From positions 183,884 through 247,883 of IMG/VR virus record IMGVR_UViG_3300047321_000238: a stretch of DNA of 64,000 nucleotides. One strand, 5' to 3'. Under the pieces are notes generated by a model that saw only the letters and a list, made by a program, of their open reading frames with translations, was not told the DNA's origin and did not search any database. Shown piece after piece: positions 31,250 to 41,546 of this stretch. Made by a program: the position numbers and the translations under genes. The stretch's first letter is position 1. Each line of letters starts with the position of its first letter.

Positions 31250-32395
31250 TTATTCCCAAATTTCGTAAGTAATTGTAGCATTAGCTGGATAAAATCCACT
31301 AGTTGCAGTGATAGTAGTTGAAGTGCAAGTAATATTAGCTACGGATCCAGAGCCAGCCCAAAAAACACCTGATATACTAGGATAAGAATAATGCCCACCA
31401 GACACGGCTGAAGATGTCATATAAATAAAACGTGCTGTAAAAGGCAATGTAAAAGTTGCTGCTGTTGAAGTCACATAATTAAATGTTCCTGTAGCATATC
31501 TTTTCCCACCTAAACTTGCTATTGTCAATGAACCTGTTACTCCGAATATGCTCTTACCACTAGGTATATTACTAGCTATAAAGTTAGCATCATAAGCATA
31601 TACCCAACAATTAGCATCACCACTCCAATATCCTTGAGCTGGCTTTAGGTAAACTGTTCCAACGGCGTTTAATCCAGTACTTATACACGCTTCTTGTTCA
31701 TGTGTAGCCATTATTCCAGTTAGTCCAATTCCATTAGCACTATTAAAAGTAGAACCAGCTAACACTTGAGCTGTAGTTGCAGTACCTGTAGTAGCTGCTA
31801 TTGTTTGTGCTCCACTAAGATATTGATTAGTAGCTATTGTTTGTACCGCGGTGCTTGGATTGTAAGTTTGTGCAGTCTTACTAGACATAGTCCCAACTAA
31901 TCCCGTATCATCATCATTGCTAAAAGTTTTACCAGCTAGAACATTAGCAATTACTGCTGTGCCCTCTGTACTAGCTTTGATAAAAAAATTATCACCACTT
32001 AAGTTGTACCATACGGTATAAGCCTTTCCTAAAATTAAGTTAGGTGCTAAAACTGTATTAGGCTTGTACAAAGGCTTTCCATTAATTGTTGTAGCAACTC
32101 CACCATTACTTGCACTTGCTATAAAAGTTCTATTATAACCATTTGTTAATGTTCCAAAAGTTAAAGTAATAACTGTTCCAGTTCCACCTGCTGTTTCATA
32201 TGCAGAGTCAGATGGCTGAATGGAATTGACAACTACAGTTAAATTATCTAAGTCTAATTGTTTTGCAAAACCAATATTTCCAGAATCAGAGCCAACATAA
32301 AACTCTTCTGTATCAGTAGTGAAAGCTGGCTCGCCTACACTTAATGTAGGAAGATTAGCTTTAGCTCCTCTTTTCATTTGTATTTTTTGACTCAT
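31250..32395 (-). CDS. Tail fibre / receptor-binding protein with an Mtd_N-like N-terminus
   Basis: MSQKIQMKRGAKANLPTLSVGEPAFTTDT; VLAGKTFS...GTM repeats; NIxxGxxIFGVTG; short C-terminal tip domain. Confidence 0.8.
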   Translation of the reverse strand: MSQKIQMKRGAKANLPTLSVGEPAFTTDTEEFYVGSDSGNIGFAKQLDLDNLTVVVNSIQPSDSAYETAGGTGTVITLTFGTLTNGYNRTFIASASNGGVATTINGKPLYKPNTVLAPNLILGKAYTVWYNLSGDNFFIKASTEGTAVIANVLAGKTFSNDDDTGLVGTMSSKTAQTYNPSTAVQTIATNQYLSGAQTIAATTGTATTAQVLAGSTFNSANGIGLTGIMATHEQEACISTGLNAVGTVYLKPAQGYWSGDANCWVYAYDANFIASNIPSGKSIFGVTGSLTIASLGGKRYATGTFNYVTSTAATFTLPFTARFIYMTSSAVSGGHYSYPSISGVFWAGSGSVANITCTSTTITATSGFYPANATITYEIWE

Positions 32396-32415
32396 TTATT
32401 ATTCCTCCTTTTTTA

Positions 32416-34107
32416 TTATCCAATTGCAAACCAAGAACACAGATGAGAACCATTCGACGTATATATTGGTAATGTAAATCCAGTACTTGATATAACTACT
32501 GGTGACGTATCTCCTCTCATGCAATAAGTTCCATATCCAGTATTACCTCCACTATCGTTAGTGTTCGAAAACGACCTAACTATAGCTCCAGCATATACTG
32601 GATCAGGTAATATTTTTTCATATATTGTAGAATAGGTCAGCGTAGTACCATCACGATATTTTAATGATATAAAAGTCGGCAAAAATGTCAAACCTGTTAC
32701 AGTTGCAGTAGCCATATATACTAGATTTCCATATACTGTAGTAAAAGCAATAGCACTTGCAGAAGATGTAACAGTACCACTTGCAAAATTTAAACCACCC
32801 ATATTTGCTGCTGTTGCTGTACCAATTACTCCAAATATATTTTTACCAGTTACTATATTAGCAGCTACTAACTCTGCTTCAGCAGCTTGAAGTTGTGTTG
32901 TTGGAACTTTTACTTCTGAAGATCCTCCTCCTGATCCAGAGAGATAGTAACCTGATTGAGCTAAATAAACTGCTAAAGCTCCATCGCCCCATTGAGAACA
33001 TGAACTTGATATATTAGCGGCTCCTATAGTTGCCATTGTTCCAGTAATTTTATTTCCATTTACATATGCAGTTTGACTTGCTAATATTTGTGGAGCTGTT
33101 GCAGTTGCATCGGAAGTGTAAGTCCCTGCTACATAATGTCCACTCCATCCAGCTTGTGCTCCTGCTTTTATATTACTAGGATATAGATTTGGAATATGAA
33201 TTCTTGATAAAGAACTTCCATTGTAATATCCTTCTGGAATATACATGTCCCATGCTCCAACTGACGTATTAGATGTGGCTCCTCCGCATAAAGCAGCACT
33301 TGCAGTAAATGCATCTATTGCAGAAGAACCTATTATTGTTCCAGATTTATTAACCATAGTACCTGTTAATTGTGCTCCATCTACAAATGCAATTTGACTT
33401 GCTAGTATCTGTGCTGCAGTTGCAGTACCAGGACTGGTATCAACAACATTACTATTTCCTGCTAATCCAAATACTGAAACTCCTGATTTTATATTAGTTG
33501 AAATAAAATTGCTATCAATAACTTGTGTGTTAGTTCCAGCTACTCCATCGTAATATCCAATTTTAGGACGAACATTTAACAGACCAGATCCATCAGTAAA
33601 AATAGCATCTGCTGTTGTTATTGTTCCAGTTCTATCTATCATAGTTCCAGTTAATCCTACATCACTATCATTGCTAAATGTTTTACTCGCTAGTACTTGA
33701 GAAGCAATTACATCTCCTTCAGCACTAGCTACACAAAAAAAACAACTACTTGCAGAATTGTACCAAATAGAATACGCCTTCCCAGCTACTAAATTCGGAG
33801 CTGTTGTTGTATTAGGTTTGTATAATGGATAGGTTGCATTAATAGTCGTTGCTGAACCACCATTATTAATATTTGCTATAAACTTTTTAGAATATCCACT
33901 TGTTAAAGTTCCAAGAGTTAGTATCATAGCAGTGCCTGTTCCACTCGCTGTTTCGTAAATCATTTCAGATTCTTTTATATATCGTATATTGCTTGTACCA
34001 TTGCCGACATATAAATCATTACTATCAGTAGTGAAAGCGGGTTCGCCTATACTTAACGTAGGAAGATTTGCTTTAGTACCACGTTTGAATAATATTTTTT
34101 GACTCAT
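32416..34107 (-). CDS. Tail fibre / receptor-binding protein with an Mtd_N-like N-terminus
   Basis: Same N-terminus; ATAxQILASQxA(F/Y)V repeats; VTGLTFLP tip domain. Confidence 0.8.
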   Translation of the reverse strand: MSQKILFKRGTKANLPTLSIGEPAFTTDSNDLYVGNGTSNIRYIKESEMIYETASGTGTAMILTLGTLTSGYSKKFIANINNGGSATTINATYPLYKPNTTTAPNLVAGKAYSIWYNSASSCFFCVASAEGDVIASQVLASKTFSNDSDVGLTGTMIDRTGTITTADAIFTDGSGLLNVRPKIGYYDGVAGTNTQVIDSNFISTNIKSGVSVFGLAGNSNVVDTSPGTATAAQILASQIAFVDGAQLTGTMVNKSGTIIGSSAIDAFTASAALCGGATSNTSVGAWDMYIPEGYYNGSSLSRIHIPNLYPSNIKAGAQAGWSGHYVAGTYTSDATATAPQILASQTAYVNGNKITGTMATIGAANISSSCSQWGDGALAVYLAQSGYYLSGSGGGSSEVKVPTTQLQAAEAELVAANIVTGKNIFGVIGTATAANMGGLNFASGTVTSSASAIAFTTVYGNLVYMATATVTGLTFLPTFISLKYRDGTTLTYSTIYEKILPDPVYAGAIVRSFSNTNDSGGNTGYGTYCMRGDTSPVVISSTGFTLPIYTSNGSHLCSWFAIG

Positions 34108-34142
34108 TTGTTATTCCTCCTTTTTCATTGGTTTAGTTAAAG

Positions 34143-34328
34143 TTATACTGTAGTATAAGAATCTAATAATGCTTTTAATTCATTGTATTGAGTAATTACT
34201 ATTCTATCTCCAGCTAAGAACAAATCTATAATGTTTTGCATTTCAACGACATCTAATGTAAGTTTATTAATAGCTGAATTAATTCTGTTTTTTAATACTG
34301 TTCCTAAAATCTCTTGTTTTTGTGTCAT
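34143..34328 (-). CDS. XkdX-like small fibre-associated protein
   Basis: IDLFLAGDRIVITQYNEL pattern; lies next to a fibre gene. Confidence 0.6.
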   Translation of the reverse strand: MTQKQEILGTVLKNRINSAINKLTLDVVEMQNIIDLFLAGDRIVITQYNELKALLDSYTTV

Positions 34329-34329
34329 A

Positions 34330-34755
34330 TTAAACAACTCCATTCTCTATATTTGTTAATTCATATTGTATAATTGCATTTTCAATATCATCAATACTAC
34401 TAGTGTTTTGGTTAACATATTCACTGATTGTGTTTATTCTACTTTCGGTAACTTGCTTATCTGCTATCACTTGAGCTTGACCATCTAATTCCTCTTGAGT
34501 ATATTTGATTACCTCAAAAGTTCTAGTTGACAAATTGACAGAATATGATTTTGCATTGTTAAACGTAGTCGCTAAAGTTCCATATTCTAATTCTATATAA
34601 TCTATCTCATCTATAAACTTGTCCTTTAATATATCATAAACTTCCATATCTCTTTCTTTTGTTGAAGGTTCTACACTTCCTTGCATTTCTGCAGTTACAG
34701 CTAGTACCTCTCCTGTTGCTATTAAGTAATATATCTTTGCACATATTTGATTCAT
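34330..34755 (-). CDS. XkdW-like tail fibre assembly chaperone
   Basis: KIYYLIATGEVL...IELEYG followed by a C-terminal coiled coil; directly downstream of a fibre gene. Confidence 0.65.
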   Translation of the reverse strand: MNQICAKIYYLIATGEVLAVTAEMQGSVEPSTKERDMEVYDILKDKFIDEIDYIELEYGTLATTFNNAKSYSVNLSTRTFEVIKYTQEELDGQAQVIADKQVTESRINTISEYVNQNTSSIDDIENAIIQYELTNIENGVV

Positions 34756-34778
34756 AATTTATTCCTCCATAATCATTT

Positions 34779-36149
34779 TTATTCATAAGCAAACCAGTTA
34801 CAAGCATTTTGTGCAACGCTAAAAGGCAATATAAAACCAGTAGAAGTTACACTTGCATGTGTAGTATCAGCTCTAAAAGCGGTTGTACCCATTGATAATG
34901 TTCCAGTATTTGTTGCAAAGCATTCAACAGTACTTCCAGCATAGTTAGAACTATAACCAGCAGACATATATAAAGTTCTCCACGAGTTACCTGCTGTTTT
35001 TGATATTATAAGTATTATTGATGGTAAAAAAGTTAAACCAGTTACTGTAACTGGCCAAGCAGCAGCAGTACCACTAGATATATATGCAAATGAAGATGAT
35101 GATGCTGCTGATGTTGCTGTACCACTTGCCATCTGCTTACCTCCTAAACTTGATACCGTTGCAGTTCCTGCTAATCCAAATATATTTGCAGTACTTAATA
35201 TGTTTGAAGCTATATAGTCAGCATCACTTTTATAAAGCCAAACATTGGTATCGTAATATCCTTTTGGCACATTATAAAATAAAGAATGTGTACCTAACCA
35301 AGTACTCAACGCTTCAAATCTTGCAGTAGTAGCTGCATCATCACCCAAGCCAGCATGACTTGCATCTGATACCATAGTTGTTCTATCAACAATATTTCCA
35401 GTTATTAAACTTCCATTTACATAACCAGTTTTCCCACTTAGTATTTGTGCAGCTGTTGCCGTTGCACTGCTTGTTTCTACTACGCTTGTTTTACCTGCAA
35501 CTCCAAATATATTAGCACCAGCTTTTATATTGGCAGATACTAAATCAGGATCACCTAATATAGTTTGTACATCACCAAGATATTGTCCTGCCGCTATAGT
35601 TTGATTAACTGTATTTGGAGTATAAGTTTGTGCAGTTTTAGTAGTAATTGTTCCTGTAATTTGTCCACTATTTACTGTAGCTGTTGCTGGAGCTAATATT
35701 TGAGCTGCTGTAGCTGTTCCACCTGTACTTGTACCACCACCTCCTTTACCCTGTAATATAAAAGAATTAGATACACTTTCATATCTTAAGTTTACGATTA
35801 AATTTAATCTTACATCAGTAACTGCTGCTCCTGAGTAGTCTAAAATACTTACATCGCCTAAAGTATTTACATTTAAAGTAATTGCTCCAGTACTAGCAGC
35901 ATTAAATTTAATAACAAAAAGATGGCCATCAGTTAATGTAATTATATTAGGTATAGTAACTGTATATGCATTTCCAGAATTAGTAGTTATATATACTGTA
36001 TTAATGTCAGAATCTTTTGCAATCCTTATATTGCTTGTGCCATTTCCTATATATATATCTTCTGTGTCTGTAGTGAAAGCAGGCTCTCCTGTATTTAACA
36101 TAGGAAGATTAATTTTAGTACCTCTTTTAAACAATATTTTTTGACTCAT
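34779..36149 (-). CDS. Tail fibre / receptor-binding protein with an Mtd_N-like N-terminus
   Basis: MSQKILFKRGTK...GEPAFTTDT; FILQGKGGG linker; tip domain paralogous to 32416-34107. Confidence 0.8.
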   Translation of the reverse strand: MSQKILFKRGTKINLPMLNTGEPAFTTDTEDIYIGNGTSNIRIAKDSDINTVYITTNSGNAYTVTIPNIITLTDGHLFVIKFNAASTGAITLNVNTLGDVSILDYSGAAVTDVRLNLIVNLRYESVSNSFILQGKGGGGTSTGGTATAAQILAPATATVNSGQITGTITTKTAQTYTPNTVNQTIAAGQYLGDVQTILGDPDLVSANIKAGANIFGVAGKTSVVETSSATATAAQILSGKTGYVNGSLITGNIVDRTTMVSDASHAGLGDDAATTARFEALSTWLGTHSLFYNVPKGYYDTNVWLYKSDADYIASNILSTANIFGLAGTATVSSLGGKQMASGTATSAASSSSFAYISSGTAAAWPVTVTGLTFLPSIILIISKTAGNSWRTLYMSAGYSSNYAGSTVECFATNTGTLSMGTTAFRADTTHASVTSTGFILPFSVAQNACNWFAYE

Positions 36150-36179
36150 ATTATCAAACCCCTTCTAAATCACTCATTA

Positions 36180-36209
36180 TAAATTACTTATATTACATAA
36201 GTTATTAAC
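36180..36209 (-). promoter_or_regulatory. Putative phage late promoter
   Basis: GTTAATA-N15-GTAATTTA, with a second GTAATATA inside the spacer. Confidence 0.6.
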
Positions 36210-36221
36210 ATAATTTTCTTT

Positions 36222-36247
36222 AAAAAAAAGACTATCGCTAGTCTTTT
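36222..36247 (-). terminator. Intrinsic terminator
   Basis: AAAAGACTA-TCGC-TAGTCTTTT. Confidence 0.75.
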
Positions 36248-36260
36248 AATCATTCTCAAA

Positions 36261-37844
36261 TTAGAATGTTCCACCATCTATTGTTGCGATAATTGCAGCT
36301 ATTGAAATATTTGCAGTACCATCAAAACTTGTAGCTGTCCCTGTAACATCTCCACTTATAGCTATAGTTCTTGCAGTAACTAACTTTGTAGTTGAAGTAG
36401 CATTGCCACTAAATGCAGGAGCAGTTACTGTACCTGTAAATATTGGTGAAGCTAATGGAGCTTTTAAAGCTAATTGATTTGTCATAGTTGTAGAGAAGTT
36501 AGCGTCATTACCTAAAGCAGTTGCAAGTTCATTTAATGTATCTAAAGTAGCGGGAGCTGTATTAACTAAATTAGCAACAGTAGTAGCTACGAAAGCAGTT
36601 GTCGCTAATTGTGTAGTGTTTGTACCTACAGTTGCTGTTGGTGCTGCTGGAGCTCCAGTGAATATTGGTGACACTAAAGGTGCTCTTGTTGCATCAATAG
36701 GATGGACATGATCTTGTCTTGAATATAAATATGAAGTACCTACCGCAACTGTTCCATTTACTAATGGACTTGCAGTACCAACTTGTCCTAATACAAATTG
36801 AGTTGTTGCAACTTGTGTTGTGTTAGTATTTACTGCAGCAGTTGGAGCAACAGGAGTTCCTGTAAATGTTGGAGTTGTAAACATAACTGTTTTAGATTCA
36901 TTAGTTACATTTCCTAATCCCATATTTGAAGCAGAAATTAAATTAGTCCAAGCTCCCCATGCTGAAGTTATATAATTTCTTTTGTATATAACGTTAACAT
37001 CATCTGGATACCATAGTTGAAATGGAATAGCAGTATCAAAATCTACAACTAATCTACCAGTATCAGTAGTAGCTGCATTTGTATTTGATCCTACTGTGAA
37101 ATCAAATATTCCAGTAGTCATTAAAGTATTAAAATCTGTAACTGCGGTATACTTAGCTTTATATACTGCATCTGTAATAGAGTATCCTGCAATTGTAGTA
37201 GGATTTGCTCCTACTGTAACTCTGCCTTTTGCATCTACAGTAATTTTAGTATAAGTACCAGCAGTTACTCCAGAGCTTGATAAAACTAAAGGTATTGTTA
37301 CATTTACAGTTCCATCAAAAACTACAGAACCTGTAGCATCTCCAGAAGTTGCAATTGTTCTAGCAGTAGTTAATTTGTTAGCAGTTGCAACAGTTCCAGA
37401 AACTGCACTTGATACAGCACTAGTAACGAAAGCAGTTGTTGCTAACTGTGTTGTATTTGTTCCAACTGTAGCTGTAGGTGCTGCTGGTATTCCAGTAAAT
37501 GCAGGAGAAACTAATGGAGATTTTAAATCTAAAGCGGTTTGTAATCCAGTTACAGTTGATATCGTATGATTATGACTGTCATCAACTACAGTAGCTACAA
37601 TAGATACATTAGAACCTCCATCAAAATTTGCAGTACCTGTTACATCTCCAGATATTGCAATAGCTCTTGCAGTGCTAAGTTTATCAGCAGCTACATATGA
37701 GTCTGGATTTATTAGTATTTTGCTTGCACCATTTCCGATATATAATTTATTAGTATCGGTAGTGAAAGCTGGTTCAGAAGTGTTTAAGGATATAGCACCA
37801 ATATTAGTACTAAGACCTCTTCTTAACAATATTGTTTGTGGCAT
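36261..37844 (-). CDS. Tail fibre shaft protein (Mtd_N-like start, ends IDGGTF)
   Basis: KLxTARxIAxSGDxTG and PTAxVxTNTTQxATTxFV repeats; APATLDTLNELATALGND. Confidence 0.8.
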   Translation of the reverse strand: MPQTILLRRGLSTNIGAISLNTSEPAFTTDTNKLYIGNGASKILINPDSYVAADKLSTARAIAISGDVTGTANFDGGSNVSIVATVVDDSHNHTISTVTGLQTALDLKSPLVSPAFTGIPAAPTATVGTNTTQLATTAFVTSAVSSAVSGTVATANKLTTARTIATSGDATGSVVFDGTVNVTIPLVLSSSGVTAGTYTKITVDAKGRVTVGANPTTIAGYSITDAVYKAKYTAVTDFNTLMTTGIFDFTVGSNTNAATTDTGRLVVDFDTAIPFQLWYPDDVNVIYKRNYITSAWGAWTNLISASNMGLGNVTNESKTVMFTTPTFTGTPVAPTAAVNTNTTQVATTQFVLGQVGTASPLVNGTVAVGTSYLYSRQDHVHPIDATRAPLVSPIFTGAPAAPTATVGTNTTQLATTAFVATTVANLVNTAPATLDTLNELATALGNDANFSTTMTNQLALKAPLASPIFTGTVTAPAFSGNATSTTKLVTARTIAISGDVTGTATSFDGTANISIAAIIATIDGGTF

Positions 37845-37890
37845 ACACATCAACTTCCTTCTAAATATTGTATATTTTCTATACAATAAC

Positions 37891-37898
37891 TATATTAC
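37891..37898 (-). promoter_or_regulatory. Putative late promoter -10-like element
   Basis: GTAATATA upstream of the fibre gene; upstream element matches poorly. Confidence 0.4.
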
Positions 37899-37939
37899 GT
37901 GCGTATGTCATCATTTTCCATATTATCTATAATTTTATT

Positions 37940-38197
37940 TTATACAATACTTGTAATCAATCCATCTACTACTGTAATTGTTTTAGAATCTACAGTAGTG
38001 AAAGTACCACTGATTCCGTTCTTTACATTGCTGTTCGATATAGCATTCTCTAAATCTACTTGTTTAGCTAGTCCTATATTGCCAGAATCAGAGCCAACAA
38101 ATAACTCTTCTGTATCAGTGGTGAAAGCTGGTTCTGCCACACTTAATGTAGGCAGATTAGCTTTTGTTCCACGTTTTAATAATATTGGATTTGACAT
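37940..38197 (-). CDS. Minimal Mtd_N-like domain protein (85 aa)
   Basis: ILLKRGTKANLPTLSVAEPAFTTDTEELFVG followed by a short SGTFTTVDSKTITVVDGLITSI tip. Confidence 0.75.
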   Translation of the reverse strand: MSNPILLKRGTKANLPTLSVAEPAFTTDTEELFVGSDSGNIGLAKQVDLENAISNSNVKNGISGTFTTVDSKTITVVDGLITSIV

Positions 38198-38221
38198 ATT
38201 TATTCCCTCCTTAGTTATTTA

Positions 38222-39403
38222 TTAGAACGTACCACCGTCTAATGCAGCAGTATCCGCATTTTGTAATGATACGATTTGATTTTGTAAACTAGTTAATGTT
38301 GTATTTATAGTACCAATACTATTATTAGTTGCTGTTGTGAAACTAGATAATGTATTGTTAACATTTGTGATACTTGTATTTAAAGCTGTTAATTGATTTG
38401 TCATAGTAGTAGCAAAGTTTGCATCATTATTTAAAGCAGTTGCTAACTCGTTTAAAGTATCTAATGTTCCTGGAGCCCCATTAATTAGTTCAGTAAACTT
38501 AGTTTCAACAAATCCATCTTTATATAAGATTCTATATTTATCATTAAATAAAGTCACTGTAGGATCAGTTGTAACGCATTCAAATGATTTATTTATAACT
38601 GAAGTTTCTATATAGATATAATCTCCGTTTACAACAGTTAAACTCATTGCATCAGCTAATGTAGTTTGAATACAAGTCGCTTTGTCTTGAGCAGTTGTTA
38701 CTGTAAATCTTGTAGCAAACGTACTACCACCTACATTCGTACATTGATAGAAGTCAGTTGTTATAGTAACAAAGTTTACAATAGTCCCAACATTAATTGT
38801 AAGACCATCTAAGTCATCTTCAGTTTCTACATCTATTGAACCTAGTCCAGCAAAGCCATCAAACTTACTATCTATATAACTATTCATAGTTAAGTAATAA
38901 GTCGGATCATTATTAATAGCTGATGCCAATTTGTTTAAAGTATTTAGAGTGGCTGGAGCTGATCCTTTAAGAGTACTAATGTTTGTATCAGTATAAGTCT
39001 TAGCAGCAGCCAAGTTACTATCTAATAAAGTTTGTATACTACTTCCATCAGCAGCAGCATTCCAAGTAGTAATTTGAGCATCTGTTACGAACTTGTGAGT
39101 AGAATCTCCCAATATAATACTTGCTGGAAGAGTAGAAGGAAGAACATAATTATTAGCACCTACTTCTATACCACCTAACTTATTTTTTTCGTCTGTTGTG
39201 TAATTCTCTTGAGATAATCCCATTCCAGTTACTTTATCTACTTTATTAGCAACATCAGATGTTGTCATTACTTCAACCAAAATAGATTCAAGATCACTTG
39301 CAGTAAATAAATTATTTAAGTCTGCAACAACTACATCTTTAGCTTGTGTCACAGAACTAATAAGTTGACCTTTATAATACATTTGTCCACTTCTAGTAGC
39401 CAT
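38222..39403 (-). CDS. Tail fibre shaft protein (ends LDGGTF)
   Basis: KVDKVTGMGLSQENYTTDEKNKL; HKFVTD; two APxTLxTLNxLAxAxNND motifs; coiled-coil C-terminus. Confidence 0.75.
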   Translation of the reverse strand: MATRSGQMYYKGQLISSVTQAKDVVVADLNNLFTASDLESILVEVMTTSDVANKVDKVTGMGLSQENYTTDEKNKLGGIEVGANNYVLPSTLPASIILGDSTHKFVTDAQITTWNAAADGSSIQTLLDSNLAAAKTYTDTNISTLKGSAPATLNTLNKLASAINNDPTYYLTMNSYIDSKFDGFAGLGSIDVETEDDLDGLTINVGTIVNFVTITTDFYQCTNVGGSTFATRFTVTTAQDKATCIQTTLADAMSLTVVNGDYIYIETSVINKSFECVTTDPTVTLFNDKYRILYKDGFVETKFTELINGAPGTLDTLNELATALNNDANFATTMTNQLTALNTSITNVNNTLSSFTTATNNSIGTINTTLTSLQNQIVSLQNADTAALDGGTF

Positions 39404-39422
39404 GTGTTAAATCCCTTCCTTT

Positions 39423-41480
39423 CTATAGTTTGTATATTTCAACATGATTTTTGTAAGTATAAACATAATTAGGATAAGTTCCTGTATAAGTAGTAATACT
39501 GCCCATGAGCAATCTATATTTACTTGTTAAGTTACCATAGTAACCTAAAGGAGATTGAGTGAATGTACCAGTAGTAGGATCAATTCCATCCATATATCCT
39601 GAACTAGCACTAGTTGTCCATTGTTGAGGATTATTAGTTAGAAGTCCTCCAAAAGCATAAATCGGATCACTATTGTTACTAGATGAATAGAAGTAATATT
39701 CTTGAGTATCACTTAAAATATCATAAATGTAATAATAAGTTTTATCCGTATCGCTACTATTAGAAGAATGTATATGCTCAGTTTGAATTTCAATTAATCT
39801 ATCAGCTTCTTGACTTGGAAGAGTATAAGCACGATATTGATCTGCATCCCAAGCAGAACTGTTTCTTGTTCTAATAAGTCCTTGATAAGTTCTAACAATA
39901 GATGCAGTATTAGTAATATCAACCTTAGCAAAATGACTATAATTAGATGTTCCATTGTTTGTTAAATTTTGTTCTTTTATATATACATAATTACCTTTTA
40001 TAGCCAAAGCAGCAGAATCATCATATGTTACTAATGATGGTAAATCACATACAGTAGTTAAAGAGAAATTCGCATTAACTCTACTAACTCTTATAAAAAT
40101 TCTTTCTCCATAGAACTCATCTGAATAACTACTAGAATACTTAGCATTCGAATGATAATATTGAACTGGAGAATAGTGACAATATTCAATAAAATACAAG
40201 TTAGCTGTATTTGAATAATCTACTATAAAATGATTAACAGTTCTCCTATTACTAAAGTTTAGATTATGAGGATCTCCATCAGCATCATTTATTACCATAT
40301 AAAAATCATCGCCAGTTCTAGTTGCGTAAGAAGCTACTTCAGCAAATTTCAAATCATATATCTTTGTTCCATATATATAATATTGTTTATTCCATAGTTT
40401 CATAGGACCATAACCATTTAAACCTGATGCAACTTTTGTTGCTAAATTTCTTCTAAGATTAAATGTATATAGATCATTACCCATGGTTCTATAAAGAACA
40501 GTTTCATAATTCACTATTCTAACAACTTCAGCTACTCTATCATTTGCAGCTACTATTGTATCTCCGCTAGTAAGAAGTGTACCACTACCTGGCGTTATGT
40601 CAGGAGTTGTATCAAATAGTCCTCCAGATTTCTTACTAGCCCTGATAAAAAAATAGCTTCCAACCCTTACTAATATAATAGGTATTCCAGCTTTTAAATC
40701 CCCTGCAGATAATAAATCTCCATCAAGATTTTTGATTTGCAAATAAGCTAATGTATTAATTCTTATTGTTGGTGAAGCTCCACAATCAACATGAGGTAAT
40801 ATAACAACAGTTACGCCATCTGAATAAGACGCCACACCTGCAATTGATACAGTATAAGCTATATTCGAACCAGTTGTAACAGCATAGTTATTACCCTTAG
40901 TAATAATTTGATTAGTCAAAGTATTAGTTGTTGCAGTATTTGTTGATGTTATAGTACTATTGATAGTTGACACAGTAGAGTCAACTTGAGTCTTTGTATA
41001 ATACCTAGTATCAGCCGCAGTCTTAGTATAATAATTAGTATCTGCTTGTGCCTTGGTATAATAATTAGTATCTGATTGCGTTTTAGTATAATAATTAGCA
41101 TCTGATTGAGCCTTAGTATACACACTATTTTGTAATAAAGTTACGGTATTATCTTGTGTATCATTATAATCTTGTAAATCAATTATGTTATTATCAATAA
41201 CATTTATAGATGTTGCTATACTAGTAAGAGCTCCATCTTGTGTAGCATCTTTAGTTTGGATAGCTGCAATCTGAGATGTAAATGTTGTATCTTTATCTTT
41301 TAAACCTTGAACATCAACGATGTTAGTATCCTTGTATAGTATTAGTTCTGTGATTCTGTCTTCAACAGAAGTTGCTCCATCGTATTCAACTGCATCTGCA
41401 GAAGTGTATGGATCTACTTCTTTTAATACTTGTCCAGTATTTTTATCTAATAACTTAATTCTTGCTTTTTCATAAGCCAT
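39423..41480 (-). CDS. Tail fibre / receptor-binding protein with a coiled-coil stalk and large aromatic beta-rich head
   Basis: DPYTSADAV start; YTKxQxD repeats; adaptor domain ending FFIRAS; AAGGAGG RBS before MAYEK. Confidence 0.75.
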   Translation of the reverse strand: MAYEKARIKLLDKNTGQVLKEVDPYTSADAVEYDGATSVEDRITELILYKDTNIVDVQGLKDKDTTFTSQIAAIQTKDATQDGALTSIATSINVIDNNIIDLQDYNDTQDNTVTLLQNSVYTKAQSDANYYTKTQSDTNYYTKAQADTNYYTKTAADTRYYTKTQVDSTVSTINSTITSTNTATTNTLTNQIITKGNNYAVTTGSNIAYTVSIAGVASYSDGVTVVILPHVDCGASPTIRINTLAYLQIKNLDGDLLSAGDLKAGIPIILVRVGSYFFIRASKKSGGLFDTTPDITPGSGTLLTSGDTIVAANDRVAEVVRIVNYETVLYRTMGNDLYTFNLRRNLATKVASGLNGYGPMKLWNKQYYIYGTKIYDLKFAEVASYATRTGDDFYMVINDADGDPHNLNFSNRRTVNHFIVDYSNTANLYFIEYCHYSPVQYYHSNAKYSSSYSDEFYGERIFIRVSRVNANFSLTTVCDLPSLVTYDDSAALAIKGNYVYIKEQNLTNNGTSNYSHFAKVDITNTASIVRTYQGLIRTRNSSAWDADQYRAYTLPSQEADRLIEIQTEHIHSSNSSDTDKTYYYIYDILSDTQEYYFYSSSNNSDPIYAFGGLLTNNPQQWTTSASSGYMDGIDPTTGTFTQSPLGYYGNLTSKYRLLMGSITTYTGTYPNYVYTYKNHVEIYKL
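40981..41120 (-). repeat. 30-bp tandem repeat (about 4.7 copies) encoding YTKxQxDxNY
   Basis: GTATAATAATTAG-type unit recurs with an exact 30-nt period. Confidence 0.85.
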
Positions 41481-41516
41481 AGTTAATTCCTCCTTGTTAC
41501 TTGTTTTTTTCATATA

Positions 41517-41546
41517 TATATTACATATCATTAATCTTTTATAACT
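41517..41546 (-). promoter_or_regulatory. Putative phage late promoter
   Basis: AGTTATA-N15-GTAATATA. Confidence 0.55.

Follow-up and report, generated by a model that had tools for sequence, protein, structure and literature searches.

Three tail fibre genes of a jumbo phage, and about 100 related fibre genes of Clostridia prophages, carry a run of seven T, a spacer of 6 nt and a predicted RNA hairpin, in the layout of a programmed −1 ribosomal frameshift that would end translation early and make a short "stub" of the fibre. The same block is also where fibre tips are swapped between phages. The window analysed is a stretch of 64,000 nucleotides, positions 183,884 to 247,883 of IMG/VR record IMGVR_UViG_3300047321_000238. 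All three sites are on its minus strand and in frame: AAT TTT TTT ATC AAA GCT AGT at 31970-31990 (codons 136-142 of the ORF 31250..32395), TGT TTT TTT TGT GTA GCT AGT at 33724-33744 (codons 122-128 of the ORF 32416..34107) and TAT TTT TTT ATC AGG GCT AGT at 40635-40655 (ORF 39423..41531). The parts are the following:

31250..32395, minus strand: fibre gene g381 (381 aa), with an Mtd_N-like amino-terminus (Pfam Mtd_N, E 1.5e-9), a predicted proximal beta-sandwich "bead" and a distal part; the 0-frame product is the full fibre, the −1 product would be 141 aa (...NFF-YQS).
31982..31988, minus strand: slippery heptamer T_TTT_TTT of g381, in the X_XXY_YYZ register.
31976..31981, minus strand: 6-nt spacer ATCAAA of g381.
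31967..31976, minus strand: 5' arm of the g381 hairpin, AGCTAGTACA, containing the −1-frame stop TAG at 31971-31973.
31934..31943, minus strand: 3' arm of the g381 hairpin, TGTTCTAGCT, making 9 pairs with one U-U mismatch and a loop of 23 nt (columns 24-33 with 57-66 of the homologue alignment A2).
32416..34107, minus strand: fibre gene g563 (563 aa); the −1 product would be 127 aa (...CFF-LCS).
33736..33742, minus strand: slippery heptamer T_TTT_TTT of g563, within a run of eight T (33735-33742).
33730..33735, minus strand: 6-nt spacer TGTGTA of g563.
33721..33729, minus strand: 5' arm of the g563 hairpin, GCTAGTGCT, with the −1 stop TAG at 33725-33727.
33689..33697, minus strand: 3' arm of the g563 hairpin, AGTACTAGC; the stem is 9 bp including one G-U pair, the loop is 23 nt, there is an inner 5-bp helix, and the centroid structure keeps the 9-bp helix.
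39423..41480, minus strand: fibre gene g702; the longest ORF (702 aa) starts at 41531, but the likely true start is ATG 41480, with AAGGAGG 8 nt before it, giving 685 aa; the −1 product would be 281 aa (...YFF-YQG).
40647..40653, minus strand: slippery heptamer T_TTT_TTT of g702.
40641..40646, minus strand: 6-nt spacer ATCAGG of g702.
40630..40640, minus strand: 5' arm of the g702 hairpin, GCTAGTAAGAA, with the −1 stop TAG at 40636-40638.
40566..40576, minus strand: 3' arm of the g702 hairpin, TTCTTACTAGC, giving 11 perfect pairs with a 53-nt loop and encoded by L-L-T-S rather than V-L-A.

The observation made in the sequence-only reading, of a T run followed by GCTAGT at the same place in three fibre genes, is confirmed, although the upper coordinates it gave were 2 nt short, at the 5' end of each site. 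Its −1 readings (YQS*, LCS* and YQG*) and the product sizes of 141 and 127 aa are correct, and 281 aa is correct if the third gene starts at ATG 41480. Chance is excluded: TTTTTTN6GCTAGT occurs three times in the window against 0.03 expected, and T7-N6-GCTAG is present only at these three places in the whole genome of 247,883 bp. The caveat that TTT, GCT and AGT are favoured codons does not explain the motif, as in the window TTT is 66% of Phe, ATC 13% of Ile, GCT 49% of Ala and AGT 31% of Ser codons, while Phe-Phe dipeptides are more often TTCTTT (13) than TTTTTT (9). A −1 stop within three codons is not unusual on its own, holding at 45% of positions.

In 65-86 non-redundant homologues from Clostridia prophages, the codons for C-F-F-I-K-A-S are almost invariant as TGT TTT TTT ATC AAA GCT AGT. 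Among the 65 homologues below 93% nucleotide identity, found with degenerate peptide patterns that do not include the motif, the frequencies are TGT 100%, TTT 100%, TTT 98%, ATC 89%, AAA 85%, GCT 95% and AGT 97%, while flanking conserved residues show normal synonymous scatter. In the same loci the background is ATC 11%, GCT 34%, AGT 31% and TGT 69%, and Phe-Phe outside the cassette forms T7 in 18 of 89 cases, against 70 of 72 in the cassette. Of 80 non-redundant homologues, 77 have T_TTT_TTT and the other three have T_TTT_TTC; the preceding codon always ends in T and the spacer is 6 nt in every sequence, within the 5-9 nt expected of a canonical −1 frameshift cassette. The same cassette was found in 29 of 30 loci from GTDB species genomes, which include Clostridium puniceum, C. 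beijerinckii, C. argentinense, Ruminococcaceae, Pelosinus, Mobilitalea and Lachnospiraceae. Free use of TTC, or of other Ala and Ser codons, had been named beforehand as an outcome that would count against a selected signal, and among close homologues it is not seen.

GCTAGT is the 5' arm of a hairpin that starts exactly 6 nt after the heptamer, a feature that the sequence-only reading did not include. The helix is 9 bp in most homologues (range 6-12), and RNAalifold predicts it by itself. In the alignment, 98.5% of cells pair, three pairs carry compensatory double changes and none of 500 shuffles reaches the observed covariation, although most helix positions never vary, so that the covariation rests on few columns and on related sequences. 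The ninth pair, made of two wobble positions, is AU in 28 sequences, CG in five, GU in four, GC in two, UA in one and UG in one, and is paired in 53 of 58 sequences against 38.7 expected. The 3' arm ACUAGC recurs in other codon contexts and at other distances in different distal modules: in "TALAKD" modules it is encoded by A-L-A, with a 6-nt loop and a 10-bp stem, and in g702 by L-L-T-S, as listed above. One homologous locus, L149, has a quite different but complementary stem, GCAUCAGC/GCUGAUGU. The arms are partly fixed by conserved residues (A-S and V-L-A), but in the same [VI]L[AS] context Leu is CTA in 60 of 66 cases in the arm, against 9 of 44 later in the same genes. Stems of 9 bp or more occur in 54 of 62 cassettes against 12 of 196 control T7 runs, of which two reach 11 bp. 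A first synonymous-resampling control gave an observed mean of 9.1 bp against 7.3, but was weak because its codon frequencies were pooled from the cassette region itself. A nearly invariant G-U pair fits RNA on the sense strand, not duplex DNA. The stem is nevertheless modest, at about −12 kcal/mol for the consensus, and single-sequence folds of 91-111 nt are not significantly more stable than shuffles (z −0.7 to −1.7), the case for the hairpin resting on comparative data. No Rfam family matches between 31000 and 42000 at E up to 1.

All 80 non-redundant sequences have a −1-frame stop within three codons or fewer, after three codons (TAG) in 70 and after one codon (a TAA in the spacer) in ten. 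The TAG is lost in seven of the ten sequences that have a spacer TAA and in none of the 70 without one (Fisher 3.8e-8, not corrected for phylogeny).

The AF2 model of the g381 protein places N-F-F-I-K-A as the last strand of a beta-sandwich, followed by a low-confidence linker. The only clear PDB match is bead III of the tail fibre gp47 of Pseudomonas phage Pa193 (PDB 9b45), with a Z of 8.1 over 88 aligned residues at 23% identity, against 3.3 for the next hit; in gp47 this is a proximal trimeric bead next to the baseplate (PMC11456595). The resemblance concerns the protein domain only, and no frameshift is known in gp47. That the heptamers lie at the end of a homologous adaptor domain, as the sequence-only reading stated, holds well for two genes, while in the third the upstream domain is barely alignable to the family. 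More distant homologues lack the cassette, among them that of Bacillus phage LY2 (where LFYATS is CTG TTC TAC GCT ACA TCC), the homologue L077 and the window's own g456; the cassette is therefore not essential to the domain. A megablast search of the fibre region against 50,697 phage records found nothing, and a tblastn search with the amino-terminal part of g381 found only two full-length relatives, both Bacillus phages, which lack the cassette. The g702 domain found no relatives in the phage records or in IMG/VR, leaving no members of its own family in which to compare the cassette.

Mosaic junctions between homologues fall at both edges of the conserved block. In pairs alike upstream and unlike downstream, divergence starts at +19 to +25 from the first T in 53 of 68 pairs, and in pairs alike downstream and unlike upstream, likeness starts at 0 to +2 in five of five pairs, although the pairs are not independent.

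The explanation we favour, with moderate confidence, is that each site is a −1 programmed ribosomal frameshift cassette inside a tail fibre gene, with an in-register slippery heptamer U_UUU_UUU, a fixed 6-nt spacer and an mRNA stem-loop whose 5' arm is GCUAGU(GC). In this view, most ribosomes would read through and make the full fibre, while a fraction would pause at the hairpin; both Phe-tRNAs would slip back one base and translation would end one to three codons later, at the UAG inside the 5' arm or at a UAA in the spacer. The product would be the amino-terminal anchor plus the proximal trimeric bead domain, ending at the last beta-strand of that domain. The 5' half of the cassette (T run, spacer and 5' arm, about 21-23 nt), kept identical across otherwise diverged phages, would also serve as the crossover point at which distal fibre modules are exchanged, and as each distal module carries its own 3' arm, a swap would regenerate the hairpin. 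The sequence anatomy, the synonymous-site constraint, the base-pair covariation, the maintenance of the −1 stop and the mosaic junctions at the block are established by the analysis; that ribosomes shift here, at what rate, and what the stub does are inferred from sequence alone. Trimeric stubs may occupy or tune fibre docking sites on the baseplate, or the shift may simply tune down the output of full-length fibre, but the function of a truncated product is a guess. Against this explanation, in E. coli U_UUU_UUU is much less shift-prone than A_AAA_AAG (Atkins et al. 2016, PMC5009743). The conservation of the 5' block, including the rare ATC, could also owe much to its use as a recombination linker.

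The interpretation in the sequence-only reading is supported in part. Its proposal of a −1 recoding signal is much strengthened, and its alternative, a crossover site for tip exchange, is supported as well, whereas actual frameshifting, and short adaptor-only chains setting the stoichiometry of tips within a trimer, remain hypotheses. It is possible, though we put this forward only tentatively, that the cassette is a "standard connector" coupling recoding to modular evolution. Its universal 5' half would be both half of a working frameshift signal and the crossover point for exchange of host-range modules, every distal module carrying a matching 3' arm so that each swap rebuilds the signal. 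The anchor-plus-bead stub would then be a functional virion or assembly component, tuning how many full fibres, or which of several paralogous fibres, occupy the baseplate.

The closest system is the −1 programmed frameshift of E. coli dnaX (tau/gamma), which shares a heptamer in the X_XXY_YYZ register, a 6-nt spacer, a downstream stem-loop and a −1 frame that closes almost at once, the shifted product being a carboxy-terminally truncated form ending at a domain boundary. It differs in that its heptamer is A_AAA_AAG, while in the phage cassette, whose shifting is inferred from sequence alone, the heptamer is U_UUU_UUU, the stop lies inside the 5' arm, the gene encodes a structural fibre, and no Shine-Dalgarno enhancer is present about 10 nt upstream; the only similar element, GGTGAT, lies 2-3 nt upstream in many members and is absent from g563 and g702. 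The conserved −1 frameshift of phage tail assembly chaperone genes (lambda G/GT type) is likewise in a tail morphogenesis gene, with a slippery site reportedly kept across very diverged phages and setting a ratio of two products (Xu, Hendrix and Duda 2004). However, G/GT shifting extends a chaperone ORF, located between the tail tube and tape-measure genes, into a second ORF, while here the site lies inside fibre genes and leads to a stop; the gene position and protein family are unrelated, and G/GT sites rarely need a defined hairpin. Conserved motifs used as recombination linkers, such as those of T-even gp37/gp38 and of mosaic tail fibres (reported by Sandmeier 1994), also consist of a short block conserved at the nucleotide level at the boundary between conserved proximal and variable distal parts, with mosaic junctions mapping to it. 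Here the block is at the same time half of a base-paired, register-specific, recoding-like signal, and the exchanged module brings the complementary arm.

Among the alternatives, the one that survives best, though we consider it unlikely, is that the block is only a recombination linker, kept identical by frequent exchange and lineage selection so that host-range modules can be swapped by homologous recombination, the T run, the −1 stop and the hairpin having no decoding role. The exact position of the junctions favours it, as does the joining of the upstream domain to many different amino-termini and distal modules; the block is of about the length needed for efficient homologous exchange, and the rare ATC and the AAA of the spacer are conserved without an obvious decoding reason. 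It does not explain the compensatory base-pair changes, why every distal module type supplies a complementary 3' arm at its own position and in its own codon context, the fixed register of the T run or the replacement of TAG by TAA. Furthermore, any conserved block in diverged DNA will passively collect crossovers, so junctions there are expected under the frameshift model too.

Less likely still is slippage at the nucleic acid level, either by RNA polymerase stuttering on the T7 or T8 run, giving a fraction of U8 mRNAs, or by DNA replication slippage (phase variation) switching the distal fibre off. Homopolymeric A/T runs cause transcriptional slippage and indel mutation, and T7 is under-represented in genes for that reason (Sharma et al. 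2014, PMC4066793); a U8 mRNA would read FF-YQS*, exactly as a −1 shift does, and three assemblies carry a frame-breaking 2-nt deletion next to the cassette. However, efficient transcriptional slippage usually needs runs of about nine or more, against T7 here (T8 in g563), and its known hairpin stimulators lie upstream. Nor does slippage explain the downstream hairpin at fixed spacing or the strict register, the T_TTT_TTC of three sequences shortening the run to T6 but keeping a valid heptamer. None of about 100 independent assemblies has a T6 or T8 frame-breaking variant. No RNA run was found to hold this phage; one DNA run, from a rhizosphere metagenome that is probably the source, holds the stretch, and its contigs show no length variant, though contigs hide rare ones. 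Apparent joints in these data are short repeats between paralogous fibre genes in one contig, not recombinants.

It is also unlikely that the hairpin is a translational pause, or an mRNA processing or stability element, at a domain boundary, for example giving the amino-terminal bead time to fold or trimerise, with the T run only the preferred way of writing Phe-Phe. The hairpin does sit immediately after the last strand of a predicted folded domain and before a flexible linker, and its pairing is selected, but T7 is 97% here against 20% for other Phe-Phe dipeptides in the same loci, the −1 stop is maintained by substitution, and the spacing is exactly that of frameshift stimulators. Crossover sites of a Gin/Cin/Min-type invertase, which lie at the constant/variable boundary of fibre genes and to whose hix/gix half-sites the string TTATCAAA bears a resemblance in the outer part (a lead only), are contradicted by the direct orientation of all three copies in the genome, the single copy within ±3 kb in each prophage locus, the lack of dyad symmetry around a 2-bp core and loop lengths of 6 to 53 nt, which do not fit a fixed protein site.

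Phage frameshifts are mainly known from tail chaperones and capsid extensions, and literature searches, which left out most subscription journals and are not proof of novelty, gave no description of this motif or of a frameshift in such fibre genes. If ribosomes do shift here, this would be a widespread and so far unannotated recoding event in receptor-binding fibre genes, of Clostridia prophages and of a jumbo phage, giving these phages a second, short product from each gene and showing how a recoding signal can be split between exchangeable gene modules. In practice, the cassette marks the natural junction at which the fibre tips of these phages are swapped, and synonymous recoding of this stretch may not be neutral, which bears on annotation and on studies of these fibres.

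The IMG/VR record analysed is that of a jumbo phage of 247,883 bp with direct terminal repeats and about 30% G+C, and the window covers its last 64 kb. The only public run found to contain it is a rhizosphere metagenome, a DNA run represented by contigs only; no RNA run contains it. On the minus strand lies a cluster of fibre-like genes, four of which start with a Pfam Mtd_N domain:

41531/41480..39423, minus strand, fibre gene g702
39403..38222, minus strand, fibre-like gene
38197..37940, minus strand, 85-aa open reading frame
37886..36261, minus strand, fibre-like gene
36149..34779, minus strand, fibre-like gene g456
34755..34330, minus strand, fibre-like gene
34107..32416, minus strand, fibre gene g563
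32395..31250, minus strand, fibre gene g381

The sequence-only reading had reported a run of T followed by GCTAGT in three of these genes, and this observation holds, although its upper coordinates were 2 nt short. The three strings are present and in frame at:

31970-31990, minus strand, in g381
33724-33744, minus strand, in g563
40635-40655, minus strand, in g702

The -1 readings it gave (YQS*, LCS* and YQG*) are right, as are the product sizes. The third of these, 281 aa, requires that translation start at the ATG at 41480. The longest open reading frame of this 702-aa gene starts at 41531, but a strong AAGGAGG lies 8 nt before the ATG at 41480 (MAYEK...), so the protein is probably 685 aa.

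Within the window, neither chance nor codon bias accounts for the motif. The string TTTTTTN6GCTAGT occurs three times against 0.03 expected, and T7-N6-GCTAG is found only at these three places in the whole genome. On the coding strand, Phe-Phe is written TTCTTT 13 times, TTTTTT 9 times, TTCTTC 7 times and TTTTTC never, while ATC is used for only 13% of Ile. Only six in-frame T_TTT_TTT heptamers exist in about 60 kb of coding sequence; three are the fibre sites, and the other three (codon starts 5083, 42282 and 45741) meet a -1 stop at once and have no comparable stem. A -1 stop within three codons is common in itself, as it holds at 45% of positions.

The decisive test is comparative. A search of IMG/VR with degenerate peptide patterns taken from elsewhere in the domain gave 74 homologous loci, 47-73% identical in protein. 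In 70 of the 72 that cover the site, the block reads NNT TTT TTT, followed by a 6-nt spacer and then GCY AGY; in most it is letter for letter TGT TTT TTT ATC AAA GCT AGT. After removal of near-duplicates, the codons of the block remain strongly biased relative to the background in the same loci:

Codon frequencies at the C-F-F-I-K-A-S block in 65 sequences below 93% nucleotide identity (first value), and background in the same loci (second value; – where none is given)
TGT: 100%; 69%
TTT (first): 100%; –
TTT (second): 98%; –
ATC: 89%; 11%
AAA: 85%; –
GCT: 95%; 34%
AGT: 97%; 31%

Equally conserved residues just outside the block show ordinary scatter, for example the next Ala (GCA 58%, GCG 24%) and the next Glu (GAA 57%). 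Other Phe-Phe pairs in these loci form a T7 run in 18 of 89 cases, against 70 of 72 in the cassette. An independent sample from species-representative bacterial genomes gave the same cassette in 29 of 30 loci and also named the hosts: Clostridium puniceum, C. beijerinckii, C. argentinense, other Clostridium, and metagenome-assembled genomes (MAGs) of Ruminococcaceae, Pelosinus, Mobilitalea and Lachnospiraceae. The exact 19-mer occurs 70 times in 2.9 million viral contigs, and all but one occurrence are in this family and this frame. The single exception in IMG/VR (locus L092, 1245-1263, minus strand) lies in a stretch with stops in the corresponding frame and is probably a chance match. More distant homologues lack the cassette: Bacillus phage vB_BceH_LY2, where the block is CTG TTC TAC GCT ACA TCC; the homologous locus L077; and g456 of the window itself, where it reads SFILQG.

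The sequence-only reading did not recognise a hairpin. A second block conserved at the nucleotide level, GTA CTA GC, lies 27 nt downstream and is complementary to GCTAGTGC; the helix therefore begins exactly 6 nt after the heptamer. On a 45-sequence alignment, RNAalifold predicts this 9-bp helix unaided. Of the alignment cells, 98.5% pair, and three pairs show compensatory double changes, with U-A to C-G occurring twice at one pair and once at another. The ninth pair, made of two third-codon positions, is AU 28, CG 5, GU 4, GC 2, UA 1 and UG 1, and is paired in 53 of 58 sequences against 38.7 expected. None of 500 shuffles reaches the observed covariation, although the sequences compared are related and not independent. 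An almost invariant G-U pair points to RNA of the sense strand. As CTAG is a palindrome, the 5' arm puts TAG in the -1 frame and the 3' arm (GTA CTA GC; for example at 33689-33697, minus strand) puts TAG in the +1 frame (TAC TAG), so that both alternative frames are closed by the two arms of one hairpin.

The 3' arm is not tied to one protein context. In distal modules that begin TALAKDVRK, it is GCA CTA GC (A-L-A) only 6 nt from the 5' arm, giving a 10-bp stem. In g702 it is TTCTTACTAGC (L-L-T-S), located 53 nt away and forming 11 perfect pairs with GCTAGTAAGAA. In the homologous locus L149, both arms are different but complementary (GCATCAGC/GCTGATGT). In the other window genes, g381 has 9 pairs with one U-U mismatch and g563 has 9 pairs plus an inner helix. 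Two controls bear on the pairing. In the tripeptide context [VI]L[AS], Leu is CTA in 60/66 cases when it forms the arm, but in 9/44 cases further down the same genes; and stems of 9 bp or more start 6 nt after the T run in 54/62 cassettes, against 12/196 other T7 runs.

Among 80 non-redundant sequences, the -1 frame closes after three codons (TAG in the 5' arm) in 70 and after one codon (TAA, from a spacer NTT AAR) in 10. The TAG has been lost in 7 of the 10 that have the TAA and in none of the 70 that lack it (Fisher 3.8e-8). The lost versions read GCC AGT, GCA TCA or GCC GCC, with the 3' arm compensating. These sequences are related, so the number of independent events is smaller than seven, although there are at least three different stem versions. 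The pattern is what one expects if the -1 frame is in fact read. It would also explain why the stem is so often GCUAG, since the arm must pair and must also carry the stop.

An AlphaFold model of g381 residues 60-200, built with a 30-sequence alignment, has a mean pLDDT of 70, and 76-91 over the domain. The model gives a beta-sandwich whose last strand is N-F-F-I-K-A, followed by a low-confidence linker. The only clear structural match is to residues 240-340 of the Pa193 tail fibre gp47 (Z 8.1, 88 residues aligned, 23% identity), with the next hit at Z 3.3. In Pa193, this is the third of three trimeric beads next to the baseplate (PMC11456595). The predicted shifted product, ...FF-YQS, replaces the I-K-A-S end of that strand with three residues and would therefore be a complete anchor-plus-bead stub, without shaft or tip. 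The tail residues vary (YQS, YKS, LCS, YQG or a single residue), so the tail itself is not selected. The 85-aa open reading frame (MSNPILLKRGTKANLPTLSVAEPAFTTDTEELFVG..., 37940-38197, minus strand, extending to about 37898) is a stand-alone copy of the fibre N-terminal Mtd_N-like anchor, 50% identical to g381 residues 1-102 and followed by stops. It lies just upstream of the next fibre gene (37886..36261), which has its own anchor, and is either a relic of module shuffling or a genuine anchor-only gene, the latter being of interest given the proposed stub products.

The block is also a real mosaic junction, and the alternative offered in the sequence-only reading, a crossover site for tip exchange, is right as well. 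Among pairs of homologues at least 90% identical in the 140 nt upstream but below 60% downstream, divergence begins at +19 to +25 from the first T in 53 of 68 pairs, that is, right after GCTAGTGC. In the five pairs that are alike downstream and unlike upstream, likeness begins at the first T. The pairs are not independent. The domain is also joined to many different N-termini, and in g702 the protein upstream of the cassette is barely alignable to the family (hhalign probability 17%, covering only the last 27 residues). We take the two roles to be linked: because modules are exchanged here, the 5' arm would have to stay universal, with each distal module bringing a matching 3' arm.

The anatomy matches that of the canonical -1 frameshift cassette, and the predicted outcome matches that of dnaX, a shift into an immediate stop giving a truncated protein. 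We consider it somewhat more likely than not that this is a functional -1 frameshift signal. The conservation, the pairing, the retention of the -1 stop and the mosaic junctions are direct results of the sequence comparisons, but that ribosomes shift here, and what a stub would do, are inferred from sequence alone. U_UUU_UUU is a weak shifter in E. coli (PMC5009743), and the stem is modest. A stub might occupy docking sites, tune the number of fibres or the choice among paralogous fibres, or merely lower full-length output; these are guesses. The interpretation in the sequence-only reading is thus partly supported: its recoding signal and its crossover site both gain support, while its idea that short chains set the stoichiometry of tips in mixed trimers remains conjecture, and seems to us, by inference, less likely for a distal part that must fold as a trimer.

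A model in which the block is purely a recombination linker does not account for the pairing, the register, the spacing or the maintenance of the -1 stop. Transcriptional slippage or mutational phase variation on the T run would give the same protein, but they do not explain the downstream hairpin or the T_TTT_TTC variants, and no T6/T8 variant appears in about 100 assemblies. The block is not an invertase site, judged by orientation and copy number: all three copies in the genome are direct, and each prophage locus has a single copy. No Rfam family matches, and the literature searched does not mention the motif or such a frameshift. The proposed signal would work like that of dnaX, but differs from it in heptamer, enhancer and gene, and it is unrelated to the G/GT tail-chaperone frameshift.

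Near the cassette, three assemblies of one prophage lineage (L083 2237-2255, minus strand; L138 1650-1668, plus strand; and L156, a Clostridium sp. MAG) have a 2-nt deletion right after the 5' arm (GCT AGT GCG A|GG TGA). The zero frame therefore ends ...CFFIKASAR*, and the whole distal fibre lies in the +1 frame. A +1 slip or loss of one T in the run would reconnect it. It is either a broken gene or a variant use of the same run. An SD-like GGTGAT (Gly-Asp codons) lies 2-3 nt before the T run in g381 (31991-31996, minus strand) and in about half of the homologues (columns 4-9 of the homologue alignment A2). Gly is GGT in 72% here, against about 25% at other Gly columns. The spacing is that of +1 (prfB-like) stimulators, not of -1 ones, and the element is absent from g563 and g702. 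Elsewhere in the cluster, the fibre-like proteins encoded at 36261-37886 and 38222-39403 (both minus strand), neither of which has the cassette, share a near-identical C-proximal motif (..APGTLDTLNELATALNNDANFATTMTNQL.. and ..APATLDTLNELATALGNDANFSTTMTNQL..) and both end in ..DGGTF, suggesting a further exchanged module.
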